Virus record (IMG/VR): IMGVR_UViG_3300026521_000003
Span: 1 to 64,000 of that record
Length of the DNA: 64,000 nucleotides
Reading direction: 5' to 3' (one strand)
Shown here one piece after another: positions 21,595 to 33,964 of the stretch; position 1 is the first letter of the stretch; each line of letters begins with the position of its first letter. The notes below the pieces were generated by a model. It did no database searches. It was not told the origin of the DNA and worked only from the letters and a program-made list of their open reading frames with translations. The position numbers and the translations under genes were made by a program.

Positions 21595-24123
21595 ATGAAT
21601 AACCTTTCTAAAAAGGCAATCGAATATTTAAAGCAATTAAATGACTTAGACATTGCATGGTTTGAAGATAAAGATAGAAAATTTGTTATGCTATTTGAAA
21701 AGCCCTCACAAGTAAAAGCTATAAAGCCCGTTATGGGATCTACAAAAGATACAAAACATATTAAAAATATTTCGCTTGCTGGTCATACTATGAGACTAAA
21801 AAATTTTGATGAATATAATCCTAAGCTAAAGGATAAATCATGGTATAAAATGGTTAAAGATAAAGATCTACCATTTATACCTGATAACTATGAGTTAGTT
21901 GTTAAAGAAAAATCAACAGGCAAATTTAAAACTGATTATCAGGAAATGGTTTTAAATGCTAAGCGAGCATTTGATGAAGCTGATTGGATTGTACTAGGTG
22001 TTGATCCTGATAATGAAGGTTGTGCATTAGGTATGGAAGTTATTATGGAATGTAATGCTGAAGATAAAGTAATCGGCATGGTTAATATGTCCAAACTTGA
22101 TTTTCATTCATTAAAAGAGGAAGTAAAAACTTTAGACAAAATACCTTTTTGGAATATGGCACAAAGTGGTTTTGCTAGAGGAGAATTTGACTGGGCTTTT
22201 GGCTTAAATAATACTATTTTAGCGTCTGTTTTATTGGGTGGTGGTCAAACATATCATGTTGGTGGTGTGAAATCACCTGTTATAAGAATGGTAGTAGATA
22301 GACTAAATCATATTAAGAATTTTAAACCTGTTAAATATTGGAGATTCGGGGGTTTAGCAAAACATAAAGAATCTGGTGTGGAATTTAATTATATTATAAA
22401 AATTAAACAAGATGATACAGATATTATCAAAACTCAAAAAAATATAGATAAACTTGAAAAGGAATTAGAGTCTATCGATAAAGATGATGAAGTTAATAAA
22501 GATAAAGTTTCATCATTATATAATGAATTAGGCAAATTAAGATGGAAATTAAATGAATTAGTTAAAGAATTTGAGAGTTCAGAAAGAGATATTTATTCAA
22601 GTAAAATGAGAAAAAAAGTAGAAAATGCCATAAAAATAGGTATGAATTTTAAAGTAAGTAATTTCACACAAAAAAATAATCTTACCCAAAATCCACCATT
22701 AGCATATTCACTAACTGACTTACAATCAGAGGCAGGTAATTTACATAATTTTACACCTGCAAAAACATTAGCTACGGCGCAAAAGTTGTATGAAGGACAA
22801 TGGCAATCTTATCCTAGAACAGATAATAGATATTATGCTAGTGGCGAAATGTCAAATATTAAAAAGATAATACCAAATTTATTAAATCTATCATCATTTA
22901 AAAATGTTAATATTCCTACTCCATTTAAAGTAAAAACTGGAGTATTTAATAGTGCAAAAGTATCAGCTCATACAGGTTTAGCACCTACAGCAAAAGAAAT
23001 GACTGACAAATCATTATCCGGAGAACAAAAAATTATTTTTGATATGGTTGCAACAAGATACCTTATTCAATTTATGGATAAATTTGAATACTATAAAGTT
23101 GAAATGGATGCCGATATTGATGATGAAATATATTTGACTACTTTTCAAAATATTCAAACTAAAAAAGGTTGGAGAGAGTTATATAATCCAGCTAATATGT
23201 ACGGTTTTACTTACGTAGAACAACAAACCTTACCAACAATGAAAAAAGGTGATAATATTGAAATCATTACGATAGAAAAAGAATCATTAGAAACTAAACC
23301 CAAACCTATGTTTAGTGAATTTAGCTTATTAAAAGGAATGGAAAATATTTCACGTATATATCCAGAATTAGAAGGATTAGAAAAAGGCATTGGTACTCCT
23401 GCTACAAGAGCAAGTATTTTAGATTCTTTATTTAAATCAAAATACTTAATCAAAAAAGGTAGAGTTATTGATGCTAGTGAAAAGGCAATAACACTTACAA
23501 ATTTATTACCTGATGAAATGACTAATCCTAAATTAAGAGCCGATATGGAAGCAAAACTTAATCAAATTGTTGATGGTAGTTTGACAAAAAAAGAATATGA
23601 ATTAGAATTTAAGAAAATGGTAGAAGAACAGGCTAAAAAATTATATGAGATAGGTGAAAAAAATAATATTGAAATAATTGATAAAGCTACTTTACCACCT
23701 AGTGAAGCACAATTAAAATTTGCAAAAACTATGGAGAAAGAATTAAATATAAAAATCCCTAAAGAAGCCTTAGAACTTAAAGATGAATTAACCAAATGGC
23801 TTAAAAAACATGAGAAAAAAATGCCTAATTTACTTTCTGATAAACAAGTAGCATTTTTAACTGAATATGGTCAAGACGATGAAGAAATCGTAGCGATTTT
23901 AGATGCAAATGCTAAAAGAGAAATGACAAAAGAACAAAAATTTAAAGCCTCTAAATGGTTAGGAACTTATATGCGAACTAGTGAATATCAGAAAAAGAGA
24001 GCTGCAAAAGCGGCAGCAACAAGAAAACGTAATAGAGAAGCTAAAATGAAAGCTATGGGTATTGAAACACCAACAGTTTCTATAAAACGTCCACGTAAAA
24101 AGAAAGAGAAAAAAGAAAAATAA
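21595..24123 (+). CDS. Type IA DNA topoisomerase (TopA/TopB-like)
   Basis: EKPS, GH, DPDNEG, SYPRTD (catalytic Tyr), AHTGLAPT, GIGTPATRA. Confidence 0.92.
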   Translation: MNNLSKKAIEYLKQLNDLDIAWFEDKDRKFVMLFEKPSQVKAIKPVMGSTKDTKHIKNISLAGHTMRLKNFDEYNPKLKDKSWYKMVKDKDLPFIPDNYELVVKEKSTGKFKTDYQEMVLNAKRAFDEADWIVLGVDPDNEGCALGMEVIMECNAEDKVIGMVNMSKLDFHSLKEEVKTLDKIPFWNMAQSGFARGEFDWAFGLNNTILASVLLGGGQTYHVGGVKSPVIRMVVDRLNHIKNFKPVKYWRFGGLAKHKESGVEFNYIIKIKQDDTDIIKTQKNIDKLEKELESIDKDDEVNKDKVSSLYNELGKLRWKLNELVKEFESSERDIYSSKMRKKVENAIKIGMNFKVSNFTQKNNLTQNPPLAYSLTDLQSEAGNLHNFTPAKTLATAQKLYEGQWQSYPRTDNRYYASGEMSNIKKIIPNLLNLSSFKNVNIPTPFKVKTGVFNSAKVSAHTGLAPTAKEMTDKSLSGEQKIIFDMVATRYLIQFMDKFEYYKVEMDADIDDEIYLTTFQNIQTKKGWRELYNPANMYGFTYVEQQTLPTMKKGDNIEIITIEKESLETKPKPMFSEFSLLKGMENISRIYPELEGLEKGIGTPATRASILDSLFKSKYLIKKGRVIDASEKAITLTNLLPDEMTNPKLRADMEAKLNQIVDGSLTKKEYELEFKKMVEEQAKKLYEIGEKNNIEIIDKATLPPSEAQLKFAKTMEKELNIKIPKEALELKDELTKWLKKHEKKMPNLLSDKQVAFLTEYGQDDEEIVAILDANAKREMTKEQKFKASKWLGTYMRTSEYQKKRAAKAAATRKRNREAKMKAMGIETPTVSIKRPRKKKEKKEK

Positions 24124-24134
24124 ATAATTTTTTC

Positions 24135-24142
24135 TATAAATA
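24135..24142 (+). promoter_or_regulatory. T4-type late promoter motif TATAAATA
   Basis: Exact match 21 bp upstream of the 24163 ORF. Confidence 0.55.
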
Positions 24143-24162
24143 AATCAAAAAGGATGATATGA

Positions 24163-24468
24163 ATGACATTACTTGAATTAAATGAATCACTTTCTCTAAA
24201 CTTTGAAAATGGAATTATTGTATATTTAGATAAATCGAATAAAACATTTAGATTTGTAGATTCAAGCGATAGTGCTCGCCGAGGATTAACAACAACTATA
24301 AAAAATAAAAATGATTATAAAAAATTAACACGACAATATAAGATTGATAGTAGTTTTGATGAATTTATACCTTTAAGTAATGATTTTAAGAAAAATAATA
24401 AGTCATCTGAAATGAGGAAAGTTTTAGCTGCTATGCAAAATGACATCCTCAATCTAAATAGAAGGTAG
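24163..24468 (+). CDS. Hypothetical protein
   Basis: AGGA RBS and late motif upstream. Confidence 0.55.
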   Translation: MTLLELNESLSLNFENGIIVYLDKSNKTFRFVDSSDSARRGLTTTIKNKNDYKKLTRQYKIDSSFDEFIPLSNDFKKNNKSSEMRKVLAAMQNDILNLNRR

Positions 24469-24474
24469 TTAATA

Positions 24475-25428
24475 ATGGGTTATGGGTATTATTCTCGACG
24501 TTATTCATACGAAAGTCCTTCTCCCATAGAAATGTCAGATAATGACATAAATACATTAATCAATACTCTCAAAGAACAAATAGAAAATAATAAATTAAAA
24601 GATATAAGATCAACATTATCCAAATTGAAATTATCCACAAATGAAAAATATAAAGATTATGTTGGATTTAATGCTGTAATTTTAGCATACGTATATGCAT
24701 TAAAAATAGGCAGTAGTAAAACAATAAGTAGTTTGGAAAAAACTATTTTTAAAAAAAATTTTACAGTTGACGGGTTAAATATTTTATCACTTTCTAAGAT
24801 TCTAAAAAATGATTTTAAACTATTTATGGATCATTATCTAATAGATAAAAATACAATATACACAATAGATGATAATGAAACTATTACCTTTTTATTCTCA
24901 AATTATCCTACTGAAGCAGAAGTAATTATTAAAAATGGTAAAATTAGTAAATTTATAAAGGGCGAGGATAGATTAAATGTAATACTATCAATAATTAAGT
25001 ATTCTGAATTATTTGAGACTATTATAATCGGTTTAACAACTTTATATGGTACCGATTATGTAGATAAATTTTCAATCAAATATGACACTTTAAAAAAAAT
25101 CCACGATGAAATAATCTTAAAATCAAAACCTCTATTAAAGTCTCTCTTAAATGATTTTTATTATATTATTTATAAAGAATTTATAACTGCAGATATTTTA
25201 ATTTATGATTTAGAACATAAGTTGTTATTAGAAAATACACAAAAAAAATATATTGAATCTATATTAGATATAAGCGAAAAAAAACTTTTTGAATTATTAT
25301 ATCTGATTAAAAATCATGAATTACGTACTAATTTTATAGCTAATTCTGAAAAAGTATTATCATTAATTGTTAAAAATGGAGATCCCACACTTATACCTAA
25401 TGAAATAAAGGACATATTTCTTTTTTAA
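24475..25428 (+). CDS. Hypothetical protein
   Basis: 317-aa open ORF. Confidence 0.6.
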   Translation: MGYGYYSRRYSYESPSPIEMSDNDINTLINTLKEQIENNKLKDIRSTLSKLKLSTNEKYKDYVGFNAVILAYVYALKIGSSKTISSLEKTIFKKNFTVDGLNILSLSKILKNDFKLFMDHYLIDKNTIYTIDDNETITFLFSNYPTEAEVIIKNGKISKFIKGEDRLNVILSIIKYSELFETIIIGLTTLYGTDYVDKFSIKYDTLKKIHDEIILKSKPLLKSLLNDFYYIIYKEFITADILIYDLEHKLLLENTQKKYIESILDISEKKLFELLYLIKNHELRTNFIANSEKVLSLIVKNGDPTLIPNEIKDIFLF

Positions 25429-25478
25429 AAAAATTGTAAAATATTATACAAATAACATAGTATAATAAGGTATTTACA

Positions 25479-25601
25479 ATGACACTATCTCACAAAAAAA
25501 TAAAATCTATTAAAAAAGTTAAATATTATGACAAAGTATATGATATAACTATGAAGTCCAACCCACATACATTTTTTGCTAATAATATTTTAGTACATAA
25601 C
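25479..25601 (+). other. Split intein C-fragment (41 aa, basic), Ser+1 at 25602
   Basis: Block F VYDI and block G LVHN followed by Ser. Confidence 0.92.
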
Positions 25602-26633
25602 AGTTGCTATTTTAGAATAATGGAGGCAGAAAATTTGGAGGAAGCTCAAAAAATTGGTGCCGATGTTGTAAAAGCATGTGATGAAGGTAGTATTCCAATG
25701 TTGGTTAAAGATATTTTTAATGGTGATGATGTCATGAGATCCGATTTTGAAGCTATTGCCCGTTCAACATTATCATATGGTAAAAAGAAACAATATGCAT
25801 TTCTAAAAGGTTGGGAAGATGGTGAAGTACTTCCAAAGCCAAAATTAGGTATTACCGGTCTATCTATTAAAAGATCTGATTCACCCAAACAACTATCTAT
25901 GGAAATGAAACCGTTCTTTACTGAAATTATGAAAGGTTTAAAACATGAGCAAATCAAAGAAGCTATGGATAAAATTGAGTCGGATTATGATGATCTAAGC
26001 TTATATGATTTATCTGCAAAACGTTCAGCGAATAATTTAGGTAAATATTTAAAAGCATTCAATTATGAAATTGAATATAAATCTAGACCTTATAATATAG
26101 AAAAAATTGATGAATTTTTAAAAGAAGAGTACCCTGATATAAAAATTAAAATAAATGATAAAATATATTTTGATTTTATGAGAGAAGGTAGAGGTCGTTA
26201 TTCATTAGAAGATGGTGAATTAATAAAAGATGTTAATGGCGAAATTTATATTGAAGCAAAGGTAAAAATGGTTGTACCATTTCATATAAAGGCGTCTATT
26301 TTATATAACTATCTATTAGATGAATATAATTTATCATCCGAGTTTAATCAAATATTAAACGGTGAAAAAATTAAACTTTTTTATATTAAACCTACAAAAA
26401 TAAATATAAAATATACAAATAGTGATGGTGAAGTATTTGATATGATACAAGAATTTGATTGTATTGCATTCCCTTCTAGTTCTAAACACATACCATCATT
26501 TATTAATGATTTTACCCCAGATAAAAAGAGAATGCTAGAAACTTATTTCTTTGGTAAAATGGAAACTATTTTTGATGTTATTGGATTTAGCAAAGAAAAA
26601 CTTGAAAATATAGCTATGGATTCACTATTCTAA
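25479..26633 (+). CDS. polB: Split-intein C-half fused to family B DNA polymerase C-terminal part (palm/thumb)
   Basis: VYDITM...TFFANNILVHN|SCYF, then KKKQYA, GLSIKRSDSP, PFHIKASILYN, GEKIK. Confidence 0.92.
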   Translation: MTLSHKKIKSIKKVKYYDKVYDITMKSNPHTFFANNILVHNSCYFRIMEAENLEEAQKIGADVVKACDEGSIPMLVKDIFNGDDVMRSDFEAIARSTLSYGKKKQYAFLKGWEDGEVLPKPKLGITGLSIKRSDSPKQLSMEMKPFFTEIMKGLKHEQIKEAMDKIESDYDDLSLYDLSAKRSANNLGKYLKAFNYEIEYKSRPYNIEKIDEFLKEEYPDIKIKINDKIYFDFMREGRGRYSLEDGELIKDVNGEIYIEAKVKMVVPFHIKASILYNYLLDEYNLSSEFNQILNGEKIKLFYIKPTKINIKYTNSDGEVFDMIQEFDCIAFPSSSKHIPSFINDFTPDKKRMLETYFFGKMETIFDVIGFSKEKLENIAMDSLF

Positions 26634-27157: not shown

Positions 27158-28117
27158 CTATTTATGGAGCCAAGATTTAATAATTTCTTTCTGTTTTTGA
27201 CTAAGATCAACATAAAAAATTTCTATTTCTACTATAAAATCCCCGATTTTATCTTTATTAATTGACTTAATACCTTTTTCTTTAAAAACTAATTTCTTTT
27301 TATTTTTTATATCATTGGTGTCAATAGTAATTTGTTCATCAACACCATCAATAATAATTTCATCTTCTATTAAAATATCTAACACATTAAGTTTTAAAGT
27401 CTTATATATATCTAAACCATCTCTCCTAAATTCACTATCATTATTAATATTAAGTTCAATATATAAATCACCTTTTATATTATTAATTTTATTAGCTTTA
27501 CCTCTCATAACTAAACGGGTATGATTGTCGACTCCTGATGGTACAACACATTTTAATTTTATAATCTCTTCTTTGAATCCTAGACCATCACAGCTACTAC
27601 ATGAATATATTTTTGTATATCCTATACCTTTACAGTTTGAACATAATATATTTGTAGTAACAAATCCACTCTTACTTTGAATAGTGCCATTACCGTCACA
27701 ATTTGGACAGGGCTTAAAGTTACCACCATACCCGTTACATTCATTACATTCACTCTTTTGCTTAAATTCAAATGGTATTTCGACACCAATGATTGATTCA
27801 TAGAAATTAATGTGCATTTGAATTACTTCATCTTTTTTAAAAGTTTTTTTTAATTTCTTTTTGATTTCTTTCTTTGGGTATCTAAAAATTGTACGTGTAT
27901 TTTTATTATAACTATAATAAAGTTTATCATAATCAGAACGTTTTTGTGAATTTGAAAGAATATCATAAGCCGCATTAATCTTTTTAAAGATAGTTTCAGC
28001 CTCTAAGTCTTTATTTAAATCTGGGTGATATTTTTTTGCTAATTTTCTATACTTATATTTTATATCCTCTAATAAAGCATTAGGAGATATTTCCAAAATC
28101 GCATAATAATCAATCAT
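27158..28117 (-). CDS. dnaJ: DnaJ co-chaperone
   Basis: DYYAIL, J-domain KYHPD, four CxxCxGxG repeats, C-terminal domain. Start MIDYY follows GGAG. Confidence 0.92.
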   Translation of the reverse strand: MIDYYAILEISPNALLEDIKYKYRKLAKKYHPDLNKDLEAETIFKKINAAYDILSNSQKRSDYDKLYYSYNKNTRTIFRYPKKEIKKKLKKTFKKDEVIQMHINFYESIIGVEIPFEFKQKSECNECNGYGGNFKPCPNCDGNGTIQSKSGFVTTNILCSNCKGIGYTKIYSCSSCDGLGFKEEIIKLKCVVPSGVDNHTRLVMRGKANKINNIKGDLYIELNINNDSEFRRDGLDIYKTLKLNVLDILIEDEIIIDGVDEQITIDTNDIKNKKKLVFKEKGIKSINKDKIGDFIVEIEIFYVDLSQKQKEIIKSWLHK

Positions 28118-28170
28118 AGTTACTCCATTTTTAAGATATTTATTTAAGGAAATTAACATAAGTATTAATT

Positions 28171-28194: not shown

Positions 28195-28221
28195 TTAAGT
28201 TTTTTGCACTATAACCGATAT
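28195..28221 (+). promoter_or_regulatory. sigma28 (FliA)-type promoter for the flagellin gene
   Basis: TTAAGTTT-N11-ACCGATAT versus consensus TAAAGTTT-N11-GCCGATAA, 100 bp upstream of the flagellin ATG. Confidence 0.75.
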
Positions 28222-28282
28222 TCTAATTGTAAGAGAAATATATACTACATTATATCATATTTCTCTTTAAATTAAACTTAAA

Positions 28283-28319
28283 TGGAAAAGGAATTTCCAC
28301 TTTACACATTGGAGGTGTA
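28283..28319 (+). promoter_or_regulatory. Two CsrA-type GGA-loop hairpins in the flagellin leader; the second contains the Shine-Dalgarno
   Basis: TGGAAA-AGGAA-TTTCCA (28283-28299) and TACAC-ATTGGAG-GTGTA (28303-28319). Confidence 0.65.
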
Positions 28320-28321
28320 TC

Positions 28322-29125
28322 ATGTTTAATTTAGGACAAGCTCAATCAATTTTAGGGATTAATAATTCAAATGATCAAATTTATAGATTAAATGAGCAGT
28401 TACAAACAGGTAAAAGAATTAACAGAGCGGCAGATGATGCTTCTGGTATGGCTATCGCAAACCAACTTAAATCACAAGCTAATGGTTTGGGTCAAGCCAT
28501 TAGAAATTTAAATGAGGCAATTTCATTAACAAACATAGCTGATGGAGCTTTAGAAGAATATACTAAAGTCCTTATGGAAATTAGAGATAAAGCGTCTCAA
28601 GCAATTTCTGATTCAAATTCAACCGAATCTAGAACAGCTTTACAAAATGATATTAATGAAATGATTAAATCTGCGGAAGCTATAGCAACTGATACGTCTT
28701 ATAATGGTATTAAATTATTAGATGGTACTTTTACAAATAAAGTATTCCAAACTGGGGCATATAGTGGACAAACAACATCTATATCAATTTCTAGTGTTAA
28801 AACAGCTGATTTGGGTATTGATGCGTTGACAGTTGATACTTCTACAAACGCTGCAACAGCATTGGATAATATCGATGCTGCTCTTAAATCTCTTGACGGT
28901 ATTAGAAGTGGTATCGGTTCTGTTACACAAGGTCTTGAATCTAAAGTTAGAAATATGCAAGTAACACAACAAAACGTCTTATCTGCAGAATCTAATATTA
29001 GAGATGTAGATGAAGCACAAGCAAAAGCTGAATTAGATAACTGGACTGTTAGAAATCAAGCTGCAATGTTCGCATTTAATATGGCAGCTCAACAACAACA
29101 AAGTATTCTAAGATTATTCCAATAG
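28322..29125 (+). CDS. Minimal flagellin (D0/D1 only), phage-encoded
   Basis: TGKRINRAADDASGMAIA, YNGIKLLDG, FQTGA, AESNIRDVD, C-terminal QSILRLFQ; 267 aa. Confidence 0.95.
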   Translation: MFNLGQAQSILGINNSNDQIYRLNEQLQTGKRINRAADDASGMAIANQLKSQANGLGQAIRNLNEAISLTNIADGALEEYTKVLMEIRDKASQAISDSNSTESRTALQNDINEMIKSAEAIATDTSYNGIKLLDGTFTNKVFQTGAYSGQTTSISISSVKTADLGIDALTVDTSTNAATALDNIDAALKSLDGIRSGIGSVTQGLESKVRNMQVTQQNVLSAESNIRDVDEAQAKAELDNWTVRNQAAMFAFNMAAQQQQSILRLFQ

Positions 29126-29139
29126 AATATTAAGATTAT

Positions 29140-29164
29140 AGGAGGGTTATTAACCCTCCTTTTT
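29140..29164 (+). terminator. Rho-independent terminator after flagellin
   Basis: AGGAGGGTTA-T-TAACCCTCCT followed by TTTT. Confidence 0.8.
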
Positions 29165-29182
29165 AATTAAAAGGAGATTATT

Positions 29183-29467
29183 ATGGGTGGATATGCTAAT
29201 GACGTAAGTAGTTTTTTATCAATTTTTTATTTTCGCATGGAAGAGAAATTAAATGAATTAATAGAATTGAGTAAAGATAAATCATTTGATAGTACTAAGA
29301 AAAGTGTTGCAATTAAAGACAAATTAATCGAAGCATTAGATATGCTTACAATGAGTGCATCAGATGATAAAATAAAAGAATTTACTGATTATCTAAGTAC
29401 GAAAATTATTCTAGGTAAAGTAGAAGATTTAGAGGACGCAAAACGTGTATGTAAACTAATACGGTAA
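29183..29467 (+). CDS. Putative FliS-like flagellin chaperone (divergent)
   Basis: All-helical, 94 aa. FLSIFY..MEEKL, FTDYLSTKI and LEDAKRVCKLIR align by eye with FliS helices (L.MLY...I.FL; LYDY...L; LDEV...L..LR). Lies between flagellin and flaG. Confidence 0.45.
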   Translation: MGGYANDVSSFLSIFYFRMEEKLNELIELSKDKSFDSTKKSVAIKDKLIEALDMLTMSASDDKIKEFTDYLSTKIILGKVEDLEDAKRVCKLIR

Positions 29468-29478
29468 AGGAGATAACT

Positions 29479-29799
29479 ATGATTCAGGAATTAACAAAAT
29501 CATTATCTAATTCAATACCTTCTATAAACTATACTGAACCACAATTAAATAATATACAAGAAAAATCTTTTAATGAAATACTTGATATTGAGAAAAGTAT
29601 AAATGAAGTTAATGAGTTATTAAAAGAAAAGAATCTAAAAGTTGAGTTAAATAGAGATATTAATATGATACAGATAAAAGAATTTGATGAAACTGGTGAA
29701 ATAGTATTAAAATCTACTCCACCAGAAGAATATATAAAAAGAGTTAAATACTTTAAAGAAAATATTCTTCCTAGTTTATTATTGGATGAAAAGGTTTAA
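29479..29799 (+). CDS. flaG: FlaG family protein
   Basis: INEVNELL...D.TGEIVLKSTPPEEYIK...LLLDEKV, the characteristic FlaG C-terminus. Confidence 0.8.
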   Translation: MIQELTKSLSNSIPSINYTEPQLNNIQEKSFNEILDIEKSINEVNELLKEKNLKVELNRDINMIQIKEFDETGEIVLKSTPPEEYIKRVKYFKENILPSLLLDEKV

Positions 29800-30996: not shown

Positions 30997-31365
30997 TTAT
31001 TTTAACTCACATCTAGAAAGGTGAAATGTAGAACTAGGTATATGTCCTTGTTTTTTATCATATATTTGCCAACCATTAACAGGATCATTAAAGATTTCAT
31101 AAGTTTTAGTATGATAAATACGTATTGCCCCTTGGGGTGATAAACATATTAAAGTGGGATAATCATTTCTAACAAGATTAAGGGCATTTTCTCTAAAATT
31201 TGTTTTTTTAAAGAAATCTAGTTTAATAAATATTACGGAAATAATTAAAATAGGAACAATTATTGCACTCCATATCTTCACTAATATAAAAAAATCTGAA
31301 ATATATATTTTTTTAAGTCTATTTTTAATTAAAGCATATTTATTTTTATTATCTTTGATTGTCAT
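30997..31365 (-). CDS. Hypothetical membrane protein
   Basis: One hydrophobic segment. Confidence 0.55.
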   Translation of the reverse strand: MTIKDNKNKYALIKNRLKKIYISDFFILVKIWSAIIVPILIISVIFIKLDFFKKTNFRENALNLVRNDYPTLICLSPQGAIRIYHTKTYEIFNDPVNGWQIYDKKQGHIPSSTFHLSRCELK

Positions 31366-32588
31366 TATTTTAAAACCTTTAATAATTGTTCTTTAGTATT
31401 TAATTCCGGTTTATCAACTACTATTTTCAGAAGCATATTCAAATGCATTCCAATTTCCGGTCCTTTAAAACCAAGGTTTATCATATCTACACCATTTACT
31501 TTTAGTTGAGTAACTTTATATGGTTCTTCATCAACCGTACCCACCTTATTTTTAAGGGTTTTTAGAGTGATTAAACCGGCTTTATGATTATTCTCCTTAT
31601 TAAGAGTTTTAAACGTGTTTAAAAGTCGTTCACATAACTCGAAATTACCATCTGCTAATCTAAGCAGTGCTTTGACCGTTGCTTGATCTGAAAAATCTCT
31701 CCCCTCAAATCCATCTTGAAATGTAATGAAAAGTGTGTATAACGCTTTATATTCAGAACTCAATTTAAGTGCTTGAATAGACCCTTTCATTTCAAGTAAA
31801 AGTGGTAAGTAATCAAATGTCTTAAATATATCTACGAGTACCATTTTATGAACTTCTTTATCTTTAATAAATCTATGGAATATCCTCATATCATGTAGAG
31901 TATCAATAACAAAGTTTAAAGAATAAGAATCCTTTTTAAGAATTTTGAACATTGAGTTTAGCTCCTGATAAAGCCGTTCTACTGAAACAATAGAGTTATC
32001 ATACGTATAAATAGCTGCATCTAATTGATCTCTTGTTGTAGTAAAACCAAGACTATCAAATCGTGAGAGAAATCTCACAAATCGAATTGAACGAAGATTA
32101 TCTTCTTTAATCCTTTCAGTTGCGTCCCCAACAAATCTGATAATTCTATCATCAGAGTCTTGAATGCCATTAGTAGGATCTTTAAGTTCATTTGTTATAG
32201 GATTATACCCAACTGCATTGATAGTGAAATCTCTACGTTTTGCGTCTTCTTCAAAATTATCAGTAAAAGCAATGGTAGCATTTCTACCATCACAAGATAC
32301 ATCATATCGATACCGTGTTACCTCATATAGTTCTTTACCGATTTTAATAGATACAGTTCCATGCATTTCGCCAGTTGGGATGACAGTTTTAAATAATTTA
32401 TTAGTTATTTCTATTGGACAATTTGTTGCAAAATCAATATCTTTTGGACTAATACCAAGATATAAATCTCTAACAGGTCCACCAACTATAAGACATTCAT
32501 AGCCTGCATCCATAAAAGTTTTAGTAATAAAAAGTGTATCTGATTTAAAAGGCTCTGGAAGTTGATCAAAATATCGTTTAAAATTCAT
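31365..32588 (-). CDS. cca: tRNA nucleotidyltransferase (CCA-adding/poly(A) polymerase family)
   Basis: VGGPVRD...DIDFAT, EDAKRRDFTINA, EDNLRSIRFVRF. Confidence 0.9.
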   Translation of the reverse strand: MNFKRYFDQLPEPFKSDTLFITKTFMDAGYECLIVGGPVRDLYLGISPKDIDFATNCPIEITNKLFKTVIPTGEMHGTVSIKIGKELYEVTRYRYDVSCDGRNATIAFTDNFEEDAKRRDFTINAVGYNPITNELKDPTNGIQDSDDRIIRFVGDATERIKEDNLRSIRFVRFLSRFDSLGFTTTRDQLDAAIYTYDNSIVSVERLYQELNSMFKILKKDSYSLNFVIDTLHDMRIFHRFIKDKEVHKMVLVDIFKTFDYLPLLLEMKGSIQALKLSSEYKALYTLFITFQDGFEGRDFSDQATVKALLRLADGNFELCERLLNTFKTLNKENNHKAGLITLKTLKNKVGTVDEEPYKVTQLKVNGVDMINLGFKGPEIGMHLNMLLKIVVDKPELNTKEQLLKVLK

Positions 32589-32703
32589 TATCTTCCTTTA
32601 ATATATCAATTAATATATTATATTGATTCTATACTTAAAACTACTTAAAAAATTGATATTGGGGCATAAATAATTATATAGTTTAAAAATATAGGATTTA
32701 CAA

Positions 32704-33593
32704 ATGAATTTTAAAAAATTTAGAACACAATTTTTTGATACTTTTAACTTTGAAATTGATGGAAGATTACATTATGTATATAGAATTACAGAAATCGATA
32801 CAAATATGTCATATATTGGATCTAGAACATGTAATAGGTCTATCCACGATGCATATACTACATGCACCAATGATTTAAAATCTTATGGTACATCATCATA
32901 TAGAAAAGAATTTATAAAAGCAAACTTAGATAAATTTAAATTCAAGATATTACGAATTTTTGATAATTCGGTTGACAAAATATTATTTGAATCATTTATA
33001 CATCAGAAATTTGACGTTAAACATAATAATAAATTTTGGAATAAATCAAATCACACACCTAATGGTTGTGATACTACTGGAAGACAATTTACTCATAGTG
33101 AAGACCATATTAAAAAGAGAACTGAATCGAGATCAAAAACGATGTTGGAAGTTGGTGAAGATGGATTAAATAGGTATCAGAGAGCAAGTATAAAAGCAAA
33201 TAAAACAAAATTAAAGAAAGATAAGAATGGGTTAAGTCAATATCAGAAATTAGCTAAGAAAGCTTGGACGACAAAAAAGAAAAAGGATTTAAATTTACTT
33301 CAAAAAATAATCCACGTTTAAATACAATAATAATTATGAATGATAATGATGAAATTATTGAGATTATTGAAAGCTCATTTACTACTTTCTGCAAAGAACA
33401 TAAATACCCTATGAATGCGTTTAGGAAATCATATATTGCTAAAGGCAAAAAAATATATATTGATTTAGATAATGGTAATTTAAAGAAAATGAAAGATACT
33501 TTTGAGTATAATACATTTAAAGGGTGGTACGCTATAAAATATATAGATCTTTCCGATGAATTAATTAAAAAAGTAAAGGAGTTTAAAAGGTGA
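32704..33593 (+). CDS. GIY-YIG (Seg-like) homing endonuclease in two overlapping frames (32704-33321, 33264-33593)
   Basis: YVYRIT...SYIGSR, Y.TSS, E..., FWNK. The frames join at A AAA AAG (33273-33279). Confidence 0.75.
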
Positions 33594-33964
33594 AATTTTT
33601 AGTAGTAGATGATTCATCAACAATGAGACGAATTATAAAGAATACAATTATAAGATTGGGGTATAAAAAAGAAAATTTATTTGAGGCAGAAGATGGCGAA
33701 GTAGCATTAAATTTATTTAGAGAAAAAGGGAATGATTTTTTTGGGATAATTTTAACAGATATAAACATGCCGAATAAAAATGGATATGATTTAATAAAAG
33801 AAGTAAGAAAATTGGATGAGAATATACCAATCGTAACTATCTCAACAGAGGGTGGAAAATCTGAAGTTTTGAAAGCTTTAAAACTTGGTTCGACAAATTA
33901 CATCGTTAAACCGTTTACACCACAAGTACTTAAAGAAAAATTAAAAGATATACTTGGAGAATAA
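33590..33964 (+). CDS. cheY: Chemotaxis response regulator CheY
   Basis: VVDDSSTMRRIIKNT, TDINMP (phospho-Asp), TEGGK, NYIVKPFTPQVLKEKL, closely matching Campylobacterota CheY as I recall it. Confidence 0.92.
   Translation: MKFLVVDDSSTMRRIIKNTIIRLGYKKENLFEAEDGEVALNLFREKGNDFFGIILTDINMPNKNGYDLIKEVRKLDENIPIVTISTEGGKSEVLKALKLGSTNYIVKPFTPQVLKEKLKDILGE

Follow-up and report, generated by a model that had tools for sequence, protein, structure and literature searches.

What is a flagellin gene doing among the replication and virion genes of a very large phage, and do the two small genes that follow it belong to the same function? The window analysed here is a stretch of 64,000 nucleotides, the first 64 kb of the IMG/VR contig IMGVR_UViG_3300026521_000003, which is 289,880 bp long. 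From the letters alone, the sequence-only reading had described a flagellin of 267 aa, a helical ORF of 94 aa resembling FliS and a FlaG-family gene on one strand of a T4-like jumbo phage, and had proposed that the phage remodels, blocks or re-coats the host filament. We first examined whether these three genes are present as described. The ORFs were exactly at the described positions and on the same strand, and this observation was confirmed. The features of the locus are collected in the table.

Features of the phage flagellar locus, with positions counted from the first nucleotide of the window
Position	Strand	Feature	Description
27158-28159	-	DnaJ homologue	Conserved divergent neighbour of the flagellin gene; link to the module uncertain
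28195-28221	+	Sigma-28 (FliA)-type promoter	-35 TTAAG, spacer, -10 CCGATAT
28231-28267	+	Leader stem-loop SL0	5' stem-loop of the flagellin leader
28283-28299	+	Leader hairpin SL1	AGGAA in the loop (CsrA-site type)
28303-28319	+	Leader hairpin SL2	Shine-Dalgarno GGAGG in the loop (second CsrA-type site)
28322-29125	+	Minimal flagellin, 267 aa	D0/D1 domains only, no central domain
29140-29165	+	Intrinsic-terminator-like element	Hairpin and T run just after the flagellin stop codon
29183-29467	+	Compact FliS-like protein, 94 aa	Predicted four-helix protein, proposed private flagellin chaperone
29479-29799	+	FlaG-family protein, 106 aa	
33590-33964	+	CheY-like response regulator	Single domain; syntenic with the module in window-type phages

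Next, we asked whether the surrounding DNA is that of a phage. The window holds a T4-type clamp loader, a split family-B DNA polymerase with an intein remnant, topoisomerase II, homing endonucleases and tail-fibre-like proteins. However, the term T4-like holds only loosely, as the nearest cultured relatives of the clamp loader were PA5oct-type and Atu_ph07-type jumbo phages at about 30-34% identity. Megablast of 20 kb around the module against 50,697 phage records gave no match, and tblastn of the flagellin found only distant flagellins (35% or less) in unrelated or fragmentary phage records. The statement of the sequence-only reading that no T4-like phage is known with this trio agrees with our searches of INPHARED and the literature, although a 2026 preprint lists flagellin and FlaG annotations in Nitrosospira phages (bioRxiv 10.64898/2026.05.02.722434). 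Rfam and tRNA scans of the window found nothing, and a scan of 35 other window ORFs revealed no further flagellar or chemotaxis families.

The possibility that the region is a host chimera, which had been named beforehand as a condition that would refute the finding, was then tested by comparison with related contigs (L followed by a number denotes a related contig or locus). The same gene order was found in independent assemblies from JGI, NCBI and Logan, and ENA contigs carry the trio, or the pair of flagellin and 94-aa genes, in other contexts. The flagellin and the 94-aa gene stay together across two divergent clades, in different orientations and in at least four genomic contexts, and the FlaG gene is conserved next to the pair in 11 loci. 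PHROGs gave nothing for ten neighbours of the module in contigs L091 and L092, so the viral nature of those two contig types stays unproven. The DnaJ homologue (Pfam DnaJ, DnaJ_C and CXXCXGXG; NCBIfam DnaJ 1.6e-66) holds the same position in L002, L003, L004 and L094. Related contigs add other sigma-28-class or motility genes, namely the anti-sigma-28 factor FlgM and a hybrid histidine kinase.

The flagellin matched Pfam Flagellin_N (PF00669, 1.4e-35, residues 11-138) and Flagellin_C (PF00700, 3.3e-15, residues 181-266), and its best NCBIfam models were the Campylobacterota-type flagellin A/B models. The best PDB sequence matches were flagellins, including filament formers of 270 aa, and flagellins of about 270 aa are known to build filaments, as in the solved filament entries 9HPZ and 9OXJ. 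In contrast, cellular Sulfurimonas flagellins are 450-680 aa long and carry an outer domain that is wholly absent here. The first 20 or so residues differ from the canonical MGFRINTN start, so export or polymerisation could be altered, but the segment that aligns with the known export-signal region is conserved. The phage-type flagellins form one clade, sister to Campylobacterales flagellins, and no species-representative genome has a flagellin closer than about 58% over part of its length. The flagellin is under strong purifying selection, with a dN/dS of 0.06 against the 91%-identical copy in L002 and a range of 0.06-0.12, while the partner genes evolve faster but remain constrained at 0.26-0.40.

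The 106-aa protein was identified as a FlaG (PF03646). It scored 25.0 bits against a Pfam gathering score of 23.8, and a profile of six phage homologues hit the solved FlaG proteins 2HC5 (9e-8) and 6JSX (4e-6). The NCBIfam equivalog models fell below their cut-offs, and PHROGs gave nothing. The top Foldseek hit was H. pylori FlaG, but the predicted model is only partly confident (pLDDT 76) and its fold matches are weak.

The 94-aa protein was more difficult to place. No FliS match was found with Pfam, NCBIfam, PHROGs or a PDB sequence search, and Pfam scans of 39 members of its family, even at E=10, gave only noise. The viral structure library gave no informative match. An hhalign comparison with 20 FliS proteins fished from cellular loci, three of them confirmed by Pfam, was collinear over 86 columns but weak (probability 3%, E 0.015). 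The protein belongs to a small family (41 clusters in 1.84 billion proteins) that lies next to this flagellin type in nearly every locus with enough flanking sequence. The AF2 model (pLDDT 91.3, pTM 0.80) is a confident antiparallel four-helix bundle, and in a search of 350,542 PDB chains FliS entries ranked 1, 3, 4, 5, 8, 14 and 18, with TM 0.63-0.69. However, the Foldseek E-values were weak (0.36-1.8 for this ranking, 0.36-3.5 for the fold-level link as a whole), and generic or designed helical bundles score nearly as well. A tyrosine at residue 4 (residue 2 in most members) is conserved in at least 90% of the family, and its equivalence to FliS Tyr10, which docks on FlhA (PMC5932034), is inferred only. 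The resemblance to FliS appears only at the fold level. The label is supported by the modelled fold, the strict adjacency to the flagellin and the conserved N-terminal tyrosine, but by no sequence-level test, so the protein is FliS-like rather than a demonstrated FliS.

The region upstream of the flagellin gene was then inspected. It carries a canonical sigma-28-type promoter sequence, judged against the pattern TAAA(G)-N14-16-(G)CCGATA(A/T), which is conserved in almost all related loci. The pattern TAAAG-N14-17-C(C/A)GATA was found by regex upstream of 14 of 19 related flagellin genes, and 3 more carry a (C/T)CGATA -10 box (L102 and L109 without a matching -35, L110 with TAAAG). We also examined whether the CCGATA motif is a general promoter of this phage. 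The data showed that it is not, as the promoter is the only intergenic match in the window and the other matches lie inside genes. The same layout occurs upstream of cellular Sulfurimonas, Sulfuricurvum and Sulfurospirillum flagellin genes.

RNAfold MFE and centroid structures showed a 5' stem-loop in the leader, and a comparable first hairpin appears in most related leaders; a stabilising role is inferred. The two following hairpins present GGA motifs 21 nt apart, the second covering the ribosome-binding site, as in the C. jejuni flaA leader with its experimentally defined CsrA sites (PMC4894983) and as in cellular Sulfurimonas flagellin genes. Stems of SL1 differ between loci with compensating changes while the AAGGA(A/T) loop is kept, and the spacing is 20-21 nt. 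SL1 is present in 10 of 18 phage leaders, whereas eight lack it, and in 10 of 10 cellular Campylobacterales leaders. Only 2 of 64 window genes have such a hairpin, and the flagellin gene is one of them.

A gene for a single-domain response regulator lies 4 kb from the module and is conserved in L002, L003, L004, L005 and L094. It matched Pfam Response_reg (2.5e-24), and the receiver-domain acidic pocket, Thr and Lys-Pro-Phe motifs are visible in its translation. The best NCBIfam model was chemotaxis CheY, with 95 bits for the window protein and 118 bits for that of L002, below the cut-off of 189.

Taken together, we favour, with moderate confidence, the view that this is a phage-borne set of late-flagellar (sigma-28 class) genes that maintains or remodels the flagellum of the infected cell. 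What the sequences establish is a D0/D1-only flagellin, a FlaG, a small protein, four-helix by its model, that nearly always accompanies this flagellin type, a FliA-type promoter sequence and a two-hairpin leader like those of host flagellin genes, and a CheY-like gene nearby; function, including expression, use of the promoter by FliA, CsrA binding, chaperone binding, export and polymerisation, is inferred. The host, a member of the Campylobacterota and probably Sulfurimonas or a relative, is inferred from flagellin phylogeny only. In this view, host RNA polymerase with sigma-28 would transcribe the phage flagellin gene once the host flagellar export apparatus is active, and translation would be gated by the host CsrA-FliW switch, so that synthesis follows export. 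The FliS-like protein would bind the flagellin C-terminus and dock it on FlhA through its N-terminal tyrosine, and the bare flagellin, needing no glycosylated outer domain, would be exported and added at the filament tip. The binding is supported only by the gene adjacency across clades, and export and polymerisation only indirectly, by the conserved D0/D1 core (dN/dS 0.06) and the host-like regulatory wiring. FlaG, which in C. jejuni antagonises FliS-flagellin docking on FlhA and limits filament length (PMC11536152), would tune or bias export and filament length, although inhibition of export sits awkwardly with a pure supply role. CheY would bias motor switching. The virus would thus keep the cell swimming on its own terms during a long infection, when host genes may be silenced, although such a shut-off by this phage is itself only supposed.

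The interpretation in the sequence-only reading was partly supported. Its gene identifications stand, with the reservation on FliS, and action on the host filament gains support from the promoter, the leader and the syntenic CheY-like gene. Superinfection exclusion, the purpose it put forward first, is only one of several options and appears unlikely. Replacement of glycosylated host flagellin by bare phage flagellin could mask the receptor of flagellotropic phages, including siblings; the missing outer domain fits this idea, a phage that replaces flagellin has precedent in FR-phi, and the module is more diverged between sister phages than its flanks (dS 0.85-1.5 against 0.25-0.69 for the five flanking genes measured), which fits an arms-race locus. 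However, filaments grow only at the tip, so within one lytic cycle the old filament stays exposed, no integrase or lysogeny gene was seen among the window ORFs scanned, and the idea explains neither FlaG, CheY nor FlgM. A motility brake or resource saver is somewhat less likely still. Here FlaG would block FliS-flagellin docking, phage flagellin and its partner would soak up FliW or FliS so that free CsrA represses host flagellin, or the abundant leader RNA would sponge CsrA, stopping costly filament growth or reprogramming the CsrA regulon. The antagonism by FlaG (PMC11536152), the known titration of CsrA by the flaA leader (PMC4894983), the divergent flagellin N-terminus and FlgM on a related contig favour this reading, but a non-exported flagellin would repress its own CsrA-gated translation, very strong purifying selection acts across the whole D0/D1 polymerisation core, and the segment that aligns with the known export-signal region is conserved.

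A FlaC-like secreted flagellin that never joins the filament, released through the flagellar export apparatus as a soluble factor or decoy, is very unlikely. Campylobacter FlaC is a short flagellin homologue that is secreted but is not a structural filament protein (PMC5466977), but FlaC mRNA is not a CsrA target (1.2-fold, PMC4894983), whereas the phage gene has the flaA-type leader, the clade is sister to the structural flagellins, and no plausible benefit for a phage of free-living sulfur oxidisers is evident. Flagellar genes on viral contigs are often contamination from prophage boundaries, but an assembly chimera, or a recently captured host fragment with no role for the phage, was rejected in practice, because the gene order recurs in independent assemblies, GC content matches the flanks, no close cellular flagellin was found among species-representative genomes, and the clade is old and under purifying selection. 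A more far-reaching possibility, which is speculative and unlikely though not excluded, is that the phage runs a private route through the host export gate, where its FlaG shuts out host FliS-flagellin complexes while its own stripped-down FliS-like chaperone still docks, handing the gate to the glycan-free flagellin, and where the highly expressed leader RNA soaks up CsrA and shifts the host CsrA regulon. With CheY, this would give the virus control over filament composition, filament length and swimming direction.

If the favoured reading is right, it would be the first case of a large phage with no sign of lysogeny that plugs its own flagellin operon into the host flagellar hierarchy (FliA, CsrA-FliW, FlhA), and it would add motility and taxis to the cell functions that viruses sustain or steer. 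Sulfur-oxidising Campylobacterota live by positioning themselves in redox gradients, and virus-controlled swimming could affect where infected cells go and where they lyse. The locus also provides a natural, minimal FliS-like chaperone and a phage FlaG, which can be used to test how chaperone-substrate complexes compete at the export gate.

Parts of this arrangement have known counterparts. The Nitrosospira phage genomes list FlaA, FlaG and CheY among their genes (bioRxiv 10.64898/2026.05.02.722434), but that work is annotation only, in a different host phylum, and gives no promoter, leader, chaperone or phylogenetic analysis. The FliS export chaperone (PF02561; structures 1ORJ, 6GOW, 6LEA, 5XEF) shares with the predicted 94-aa model an up-down four-helix bundle over the full length and a gene next to a flagellin, and both have a conserved tyrosine near the N-terminus whose equivalence is inferred only, but the phage protein is 30-40 residues shorter and lacks HMM-level similarity in our searches. 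The late flagellar regulon of Campylobacterota (flaA, the flaG-fliD-fliS operon and flgM) with CsrA-FliW control matches in promoter type, two-hairpin GGA leader with 21-nt spacing, FlaG family and FliS-like fold. However, the genes here are on a virus, the flagellin has lost the glycosylated central domain, the chaperone is about 95 aa instead of about 135 aa and is unrecognisable by sequence, fliD is absent, and the order is flagellin, chaperone, flaG. Flagellar remodelling by phages has so far been described for temperate Enterobacter phages. The Flagellin Remodeling prophage FR-phi (fliC_P plus the RNA-guided repressor TldR; PMC13418256) likewise carries its own flagellin isoform, and changes what the host filament is made of, but it is a temperate siphovirus of an enterobacterium that silences host fliC with a TnpB-derived repressor. 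In the present phage the neighbours are DnaJ, an NMN adenylyltransferase-like protein and a CCA-adding enzyme, no TnpB or integrase family was found among the window ORFs scanned, the genome is about 290 kb with T4-type replication genes, the companions are a chaperone-like protein, FlaG and a CheY-like protein, and control appears to run through the host sigma-28 and CsrA circuits. By analogy only, the proposed logic is that of auxiliary host-function genes of lytic phages such as cyanophage psbA, which supplies a fast-turnover component to keep photosynthesis running during infection, except that the function concerned here is motility and taxis rather than energy metabolism, and that the gene set includes regulators.

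First, the three same-strand ORFs described in the sequence-only reading were examined, and all three were found where it had placed them. The observation therefore held. The first ORF is a flagellin, with Pfam matches to Flagellin_N (1.4e-35) and Flagellin_C (3.3e-15), and its best NCBIfam models were the Campylobacterota flagellin A/B models. This flagellin has no central domain, only the D0/D1 core, and flagellins of about 270 aa with solved filament structures were among its best PDB matches. The third ORF is a FlaG, which scored 25.0 bits in Pfam against a gathering score of 23.8. A profile of phage homologues hit the solved FlaG proteins 2HC5 (9e-8) and 6JSX (4e-6), and H. pylori FlaG was the top, though weak, structural match of its predicted model. 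However, the middle ORF had no match in Pfam, NCBIfam, PHROGs or PDB sequences.

Coordinates of the flagellar module, its neighbors and related loci (window positions unless a contig is named)
Location	Strand	Feature
21595-26633		DNA polymerase that appears split, with an 842-aa ORF upstream of the C-terminal part
25479-26633		384-aa C-terminal part of the polymerase, beginning with an intein-splicing remnant
27158-28159	-	Full-length DnaJ, divergent neighbor of the flagellin gene
28195-28221		TTAAG-N15-CCGATAT upstream of the flagellin gene
28322-29125		Flagellin, 267 aa
29183-29467		FliS-like chaperone candidate, 94 aa
29479-29799		FlaG, 106 aa
29796-30563	-	NMN-adenylyltransferase-like protein
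31365-32588	-	CCA-adding enzyme
32589-33589		About 1 kb between the CCA-adding enzyme gene and the CheY-like gene, holding a 205-aa ORF
33590-33964	+	CheY-like single-domain response regulator, GTG start
First 35 kb, ORF not located		GTP cyclohydrolase I homologue
L002:10001-11433		Sister-phage region compared with window 28322-29799
L004:557-3055	+	Related phage contig; 832-aa hybrid histidine kinase
L091:323-535	-	L091/L103 (Ga0256828_1000002, 232 kb), the contig with the module genes, FlgM, FtsH and a DnaE-type polymerase
L129:747-2789		3.2-kb metagenome contig; 459-aa flagellin with a central domain, followed by FliS-like and FlaG genes
L053:7902-9501	-	Cellular Sulfurimonas locus; 449-aa ORF and overlapping 102-aa ORF on the opposite strand

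The genomic context of the module was then analyzed. The IMG/VR contig, of which the first 64 kb were examined, has 289,880 bp and is the largest contig of its metagenome. The window holds a T4-type clamp loader, NAD-dependent ligase, an apparently split family-B polymerase with an intein remnant, an arrangement that is conserved in related contigs, topoisomerase II, homing endonucleases and tail-fibre-like proteins, as well as GTP cyclohydrolase I, dUTPase and ClpP. The GTP cyclohydrolase I homologue (Pfam 2.9e-25) is present among the replication genes and may point to a 7-deazaguanine-type DNA modification pathway. No cultured phage was close at the DNA level, and the nearest cultured relatives of the clamp loader were PA5oct-type and Atu_ph07-type jumbo phages at 30-34% identity. 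Therefore, the description of this phage as T4-like in the sequence-only reading is true only in a broad sense.

That the region might be a host chimera had been named in advance as a ground for refutation, and the integrity of the contig was examined accordingly. The GC content was even across the module. One gene order recurred, namely polymerase part, DnaJ, flagellin, 95-aa ORF, FlaG, NMN-adenylyltransferase-like gene, CCA-adding enzyme, CheY-like gene and then virion genes, and it was found in a 172-kb IMG/VR contig (flagellin 91% identical), a 496-kb NCBI contig, JGI contigs and a Logan assembly. A host chimera is therefore excluded. The DnaJ, NMN-adenylyltransferase-like and CCA-adding enzyme genes flank the module and are conserved with it. 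In contrast, the segment of about 1 kb upstream of the CheY-like gene is absent from the sister phage L002; its 205-aa ORF has a GIY-YIG-like motif, judged by eye, but no Pfam hit at 1e-4, and the segment looks like a free-standing homing-endonuclease insertion.

We next investigated the 94-aa protein. A profile search of 1.84 billion representative proteins found only 41 clusters, all about 90-105 aa, and none of 39 members hit Pfam FliS. FliS proteins were collected from cellular loci, three of them confirmed by Pfam, and the two families were compared with hhalign. The alignment was collinear over 86 columns and placed the S..EFL..Y motif of the family on the ASP..L..MLY motif of FliS, but the probability was only 3% and E was 0.015. 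The AlphaFold model was confident (pLDDT 91.3, pTM 0.80) and showed four helices. Among 350,542 PDB chains, FliS structures took ranks 1, 3, 4, 5, 8, 14 and 18, with TM 0.63-0.69 over the full length. However, the E-values were weak and designed bundles scored nearly as well, so the fold test is positive but not specific, and a search of the viral structure library added nothing. The family has a near-invariant tyrosine at its N-terminus; in FliS, Tyr10 of the N-terminal helix is essential for docking on FlhA (PMC5932034), although equivalence of the two residues is only inferred. The strongest argument is linkage. A family member lies next to the flagellin in nearly every locus with enough flanking sequence. 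It is downstream on the same strand in the clade of 267-269-aa flagellins, while in a second clade of 274-aa flagellins it is convergent or upstream in most loci and about 2 kb away in one. We therefore call this protein a compact FliS-like chaperone candidate, not a FliS family member.

The sequence upstream of the flagellin gene was also analyzed. The TTAAG-N15-CCGATAT element found there is the FliA (sigma-28) consensus. The motif is present upstream of almost all related flagellin genes in all genomic contexts, and in the window it is the only intergenic match. Cellular Sulfurimonas, Sulfuricurvum and Sulfurospirillum flagellin genes have the same promoter. In one cellular Sulfurimonas locus, L053, the two overlapping ORFs between the flagellin gene and fliD/fliS look, by eye only, like a HipA-like kinase and a small antitoxin-like partner. 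The leader was predicted to fold into three hairpins (z = -2.2), of which the second presents AGGAA in its loop and the third holds the Shine-Dalgarno GGAGG, and the two GGA motifs are 21 nt apart. Across loci the stems differ (GGAAA, GGAC, GGTCA, TTTCACA, GGAAC) with matching changes on the other side, while the AAGGA(A/T) loop is kept. Ten of 18 phage leaders and 10 of 10 cellular leaders have this hairpin, but only 2 of 64 window genes do, the flagellin gene among them. This is the architecture shown experimentally for C. jejuni flaA, which has two ANGGA hairpins with 21-nt spacing, repression by CsrA and relief by FliW (PMC4894983). A strong terminator-like hairpin follows the flagellin stop codon.

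To examine the origin of the module, a tree of 104 flagellins was built. The data showed that all the short flagellins of this kind fall in one clade (SH-aLRT 98), which is sister to cellular Campylobacterales flagellins, and the joint clade also has support of 98. Among 185,579 species-representative genomes, none has a closer relative than about 58% over the N-terminal part. Cellular relatives are 450-680 aa with a central domain. On the 3.2-kb contig L129, the longer flagellin is followed by the same two partner genes; it is sister to the short-flagellin clade and may be an intermediate form. The flagellin is under strong purifying selection (dN/dS 0.06 and 0.12), while the FliS-like gene, FlaG and CheY evolve faster (0.26-0.40). 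Between the window and its sister phage L002, the synonymous divergence of the three module genes (0.85-1.5) exceeds that of the five flanking genes measured (0.25-0.69), which hints at module exchange between phages or faster turnover. The pair also occurs on other long contigs, which may be viral or cellular. One is a 232-kb contig with 19% GC, the second largest contig of the same metagenome, which carries the flagellin, FliS-like and FlaG genes in a different context together with an FlgM anti-sigma-28 homologue, FtsH and a DnaE-type polymerase. Another is a 196-kb contig with GyrB, SmpB, TopA and RecA.

Other genes possibly related to motility were found near the module. The CheY-like response regulator is syntenic with the flagellin module in all window-type phages, and CheY is its best NCBIfam model, although the score is below the cut-off. 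One relative, the phage contig L004, also carries a hybrid histidine kinase with PAS, HisKA, HATPase and receiver domains about 5 kb upstream of the flagellin module.

In our best reading, the phage carries the fast-turnover late-flagellar proteins and would express them through the host's own sigma-28 and CsrA-FliW circuits. The private chaperone candidate would deliver a cheap, domain-less flagellin to the export gate, FlaG, an antagonist of FliS-flagellin docking on FlhA (PMC11536152), would tune export, and the CheY-like protein would bias switching. The analysis establishes the gene identities, with the 94-aa protein only as a FliS-like candidate and the regulator only as CheY-like, and the wiring as it is read from sequence. 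However, use of these elements by FliA and CsrA, export and polymerisation of the flagellin, the roles of the partner proteins and any benefit to the phage are inferred. Receptor masking, a motility brake or titration of regulators, and a FlaC-like secreted flagellin remain as rival explanations, and the interpretation in the sequence-only reading is partly supported.

A 2026 preprint lists flagellin, FlaG and CheY annotations in Nitrosospira phages without analysis; besides this and the FR-phi case below, literature searches for flagellin in huge phages or Sulfurimonas phages found nothing else. The only described case of a phage changing filament composition is the temperate Enterobacter prophage FR-phi, which pairs its flagellin with the RNA-guided repressor TldR. 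In the phage studied here no TldR and no sign of lysogeny were seen among the window ORFs scanned, and the genome type, the host phylum inferred from flagellin phylogeny and the set of companion genes all differ from those of FR-phi.
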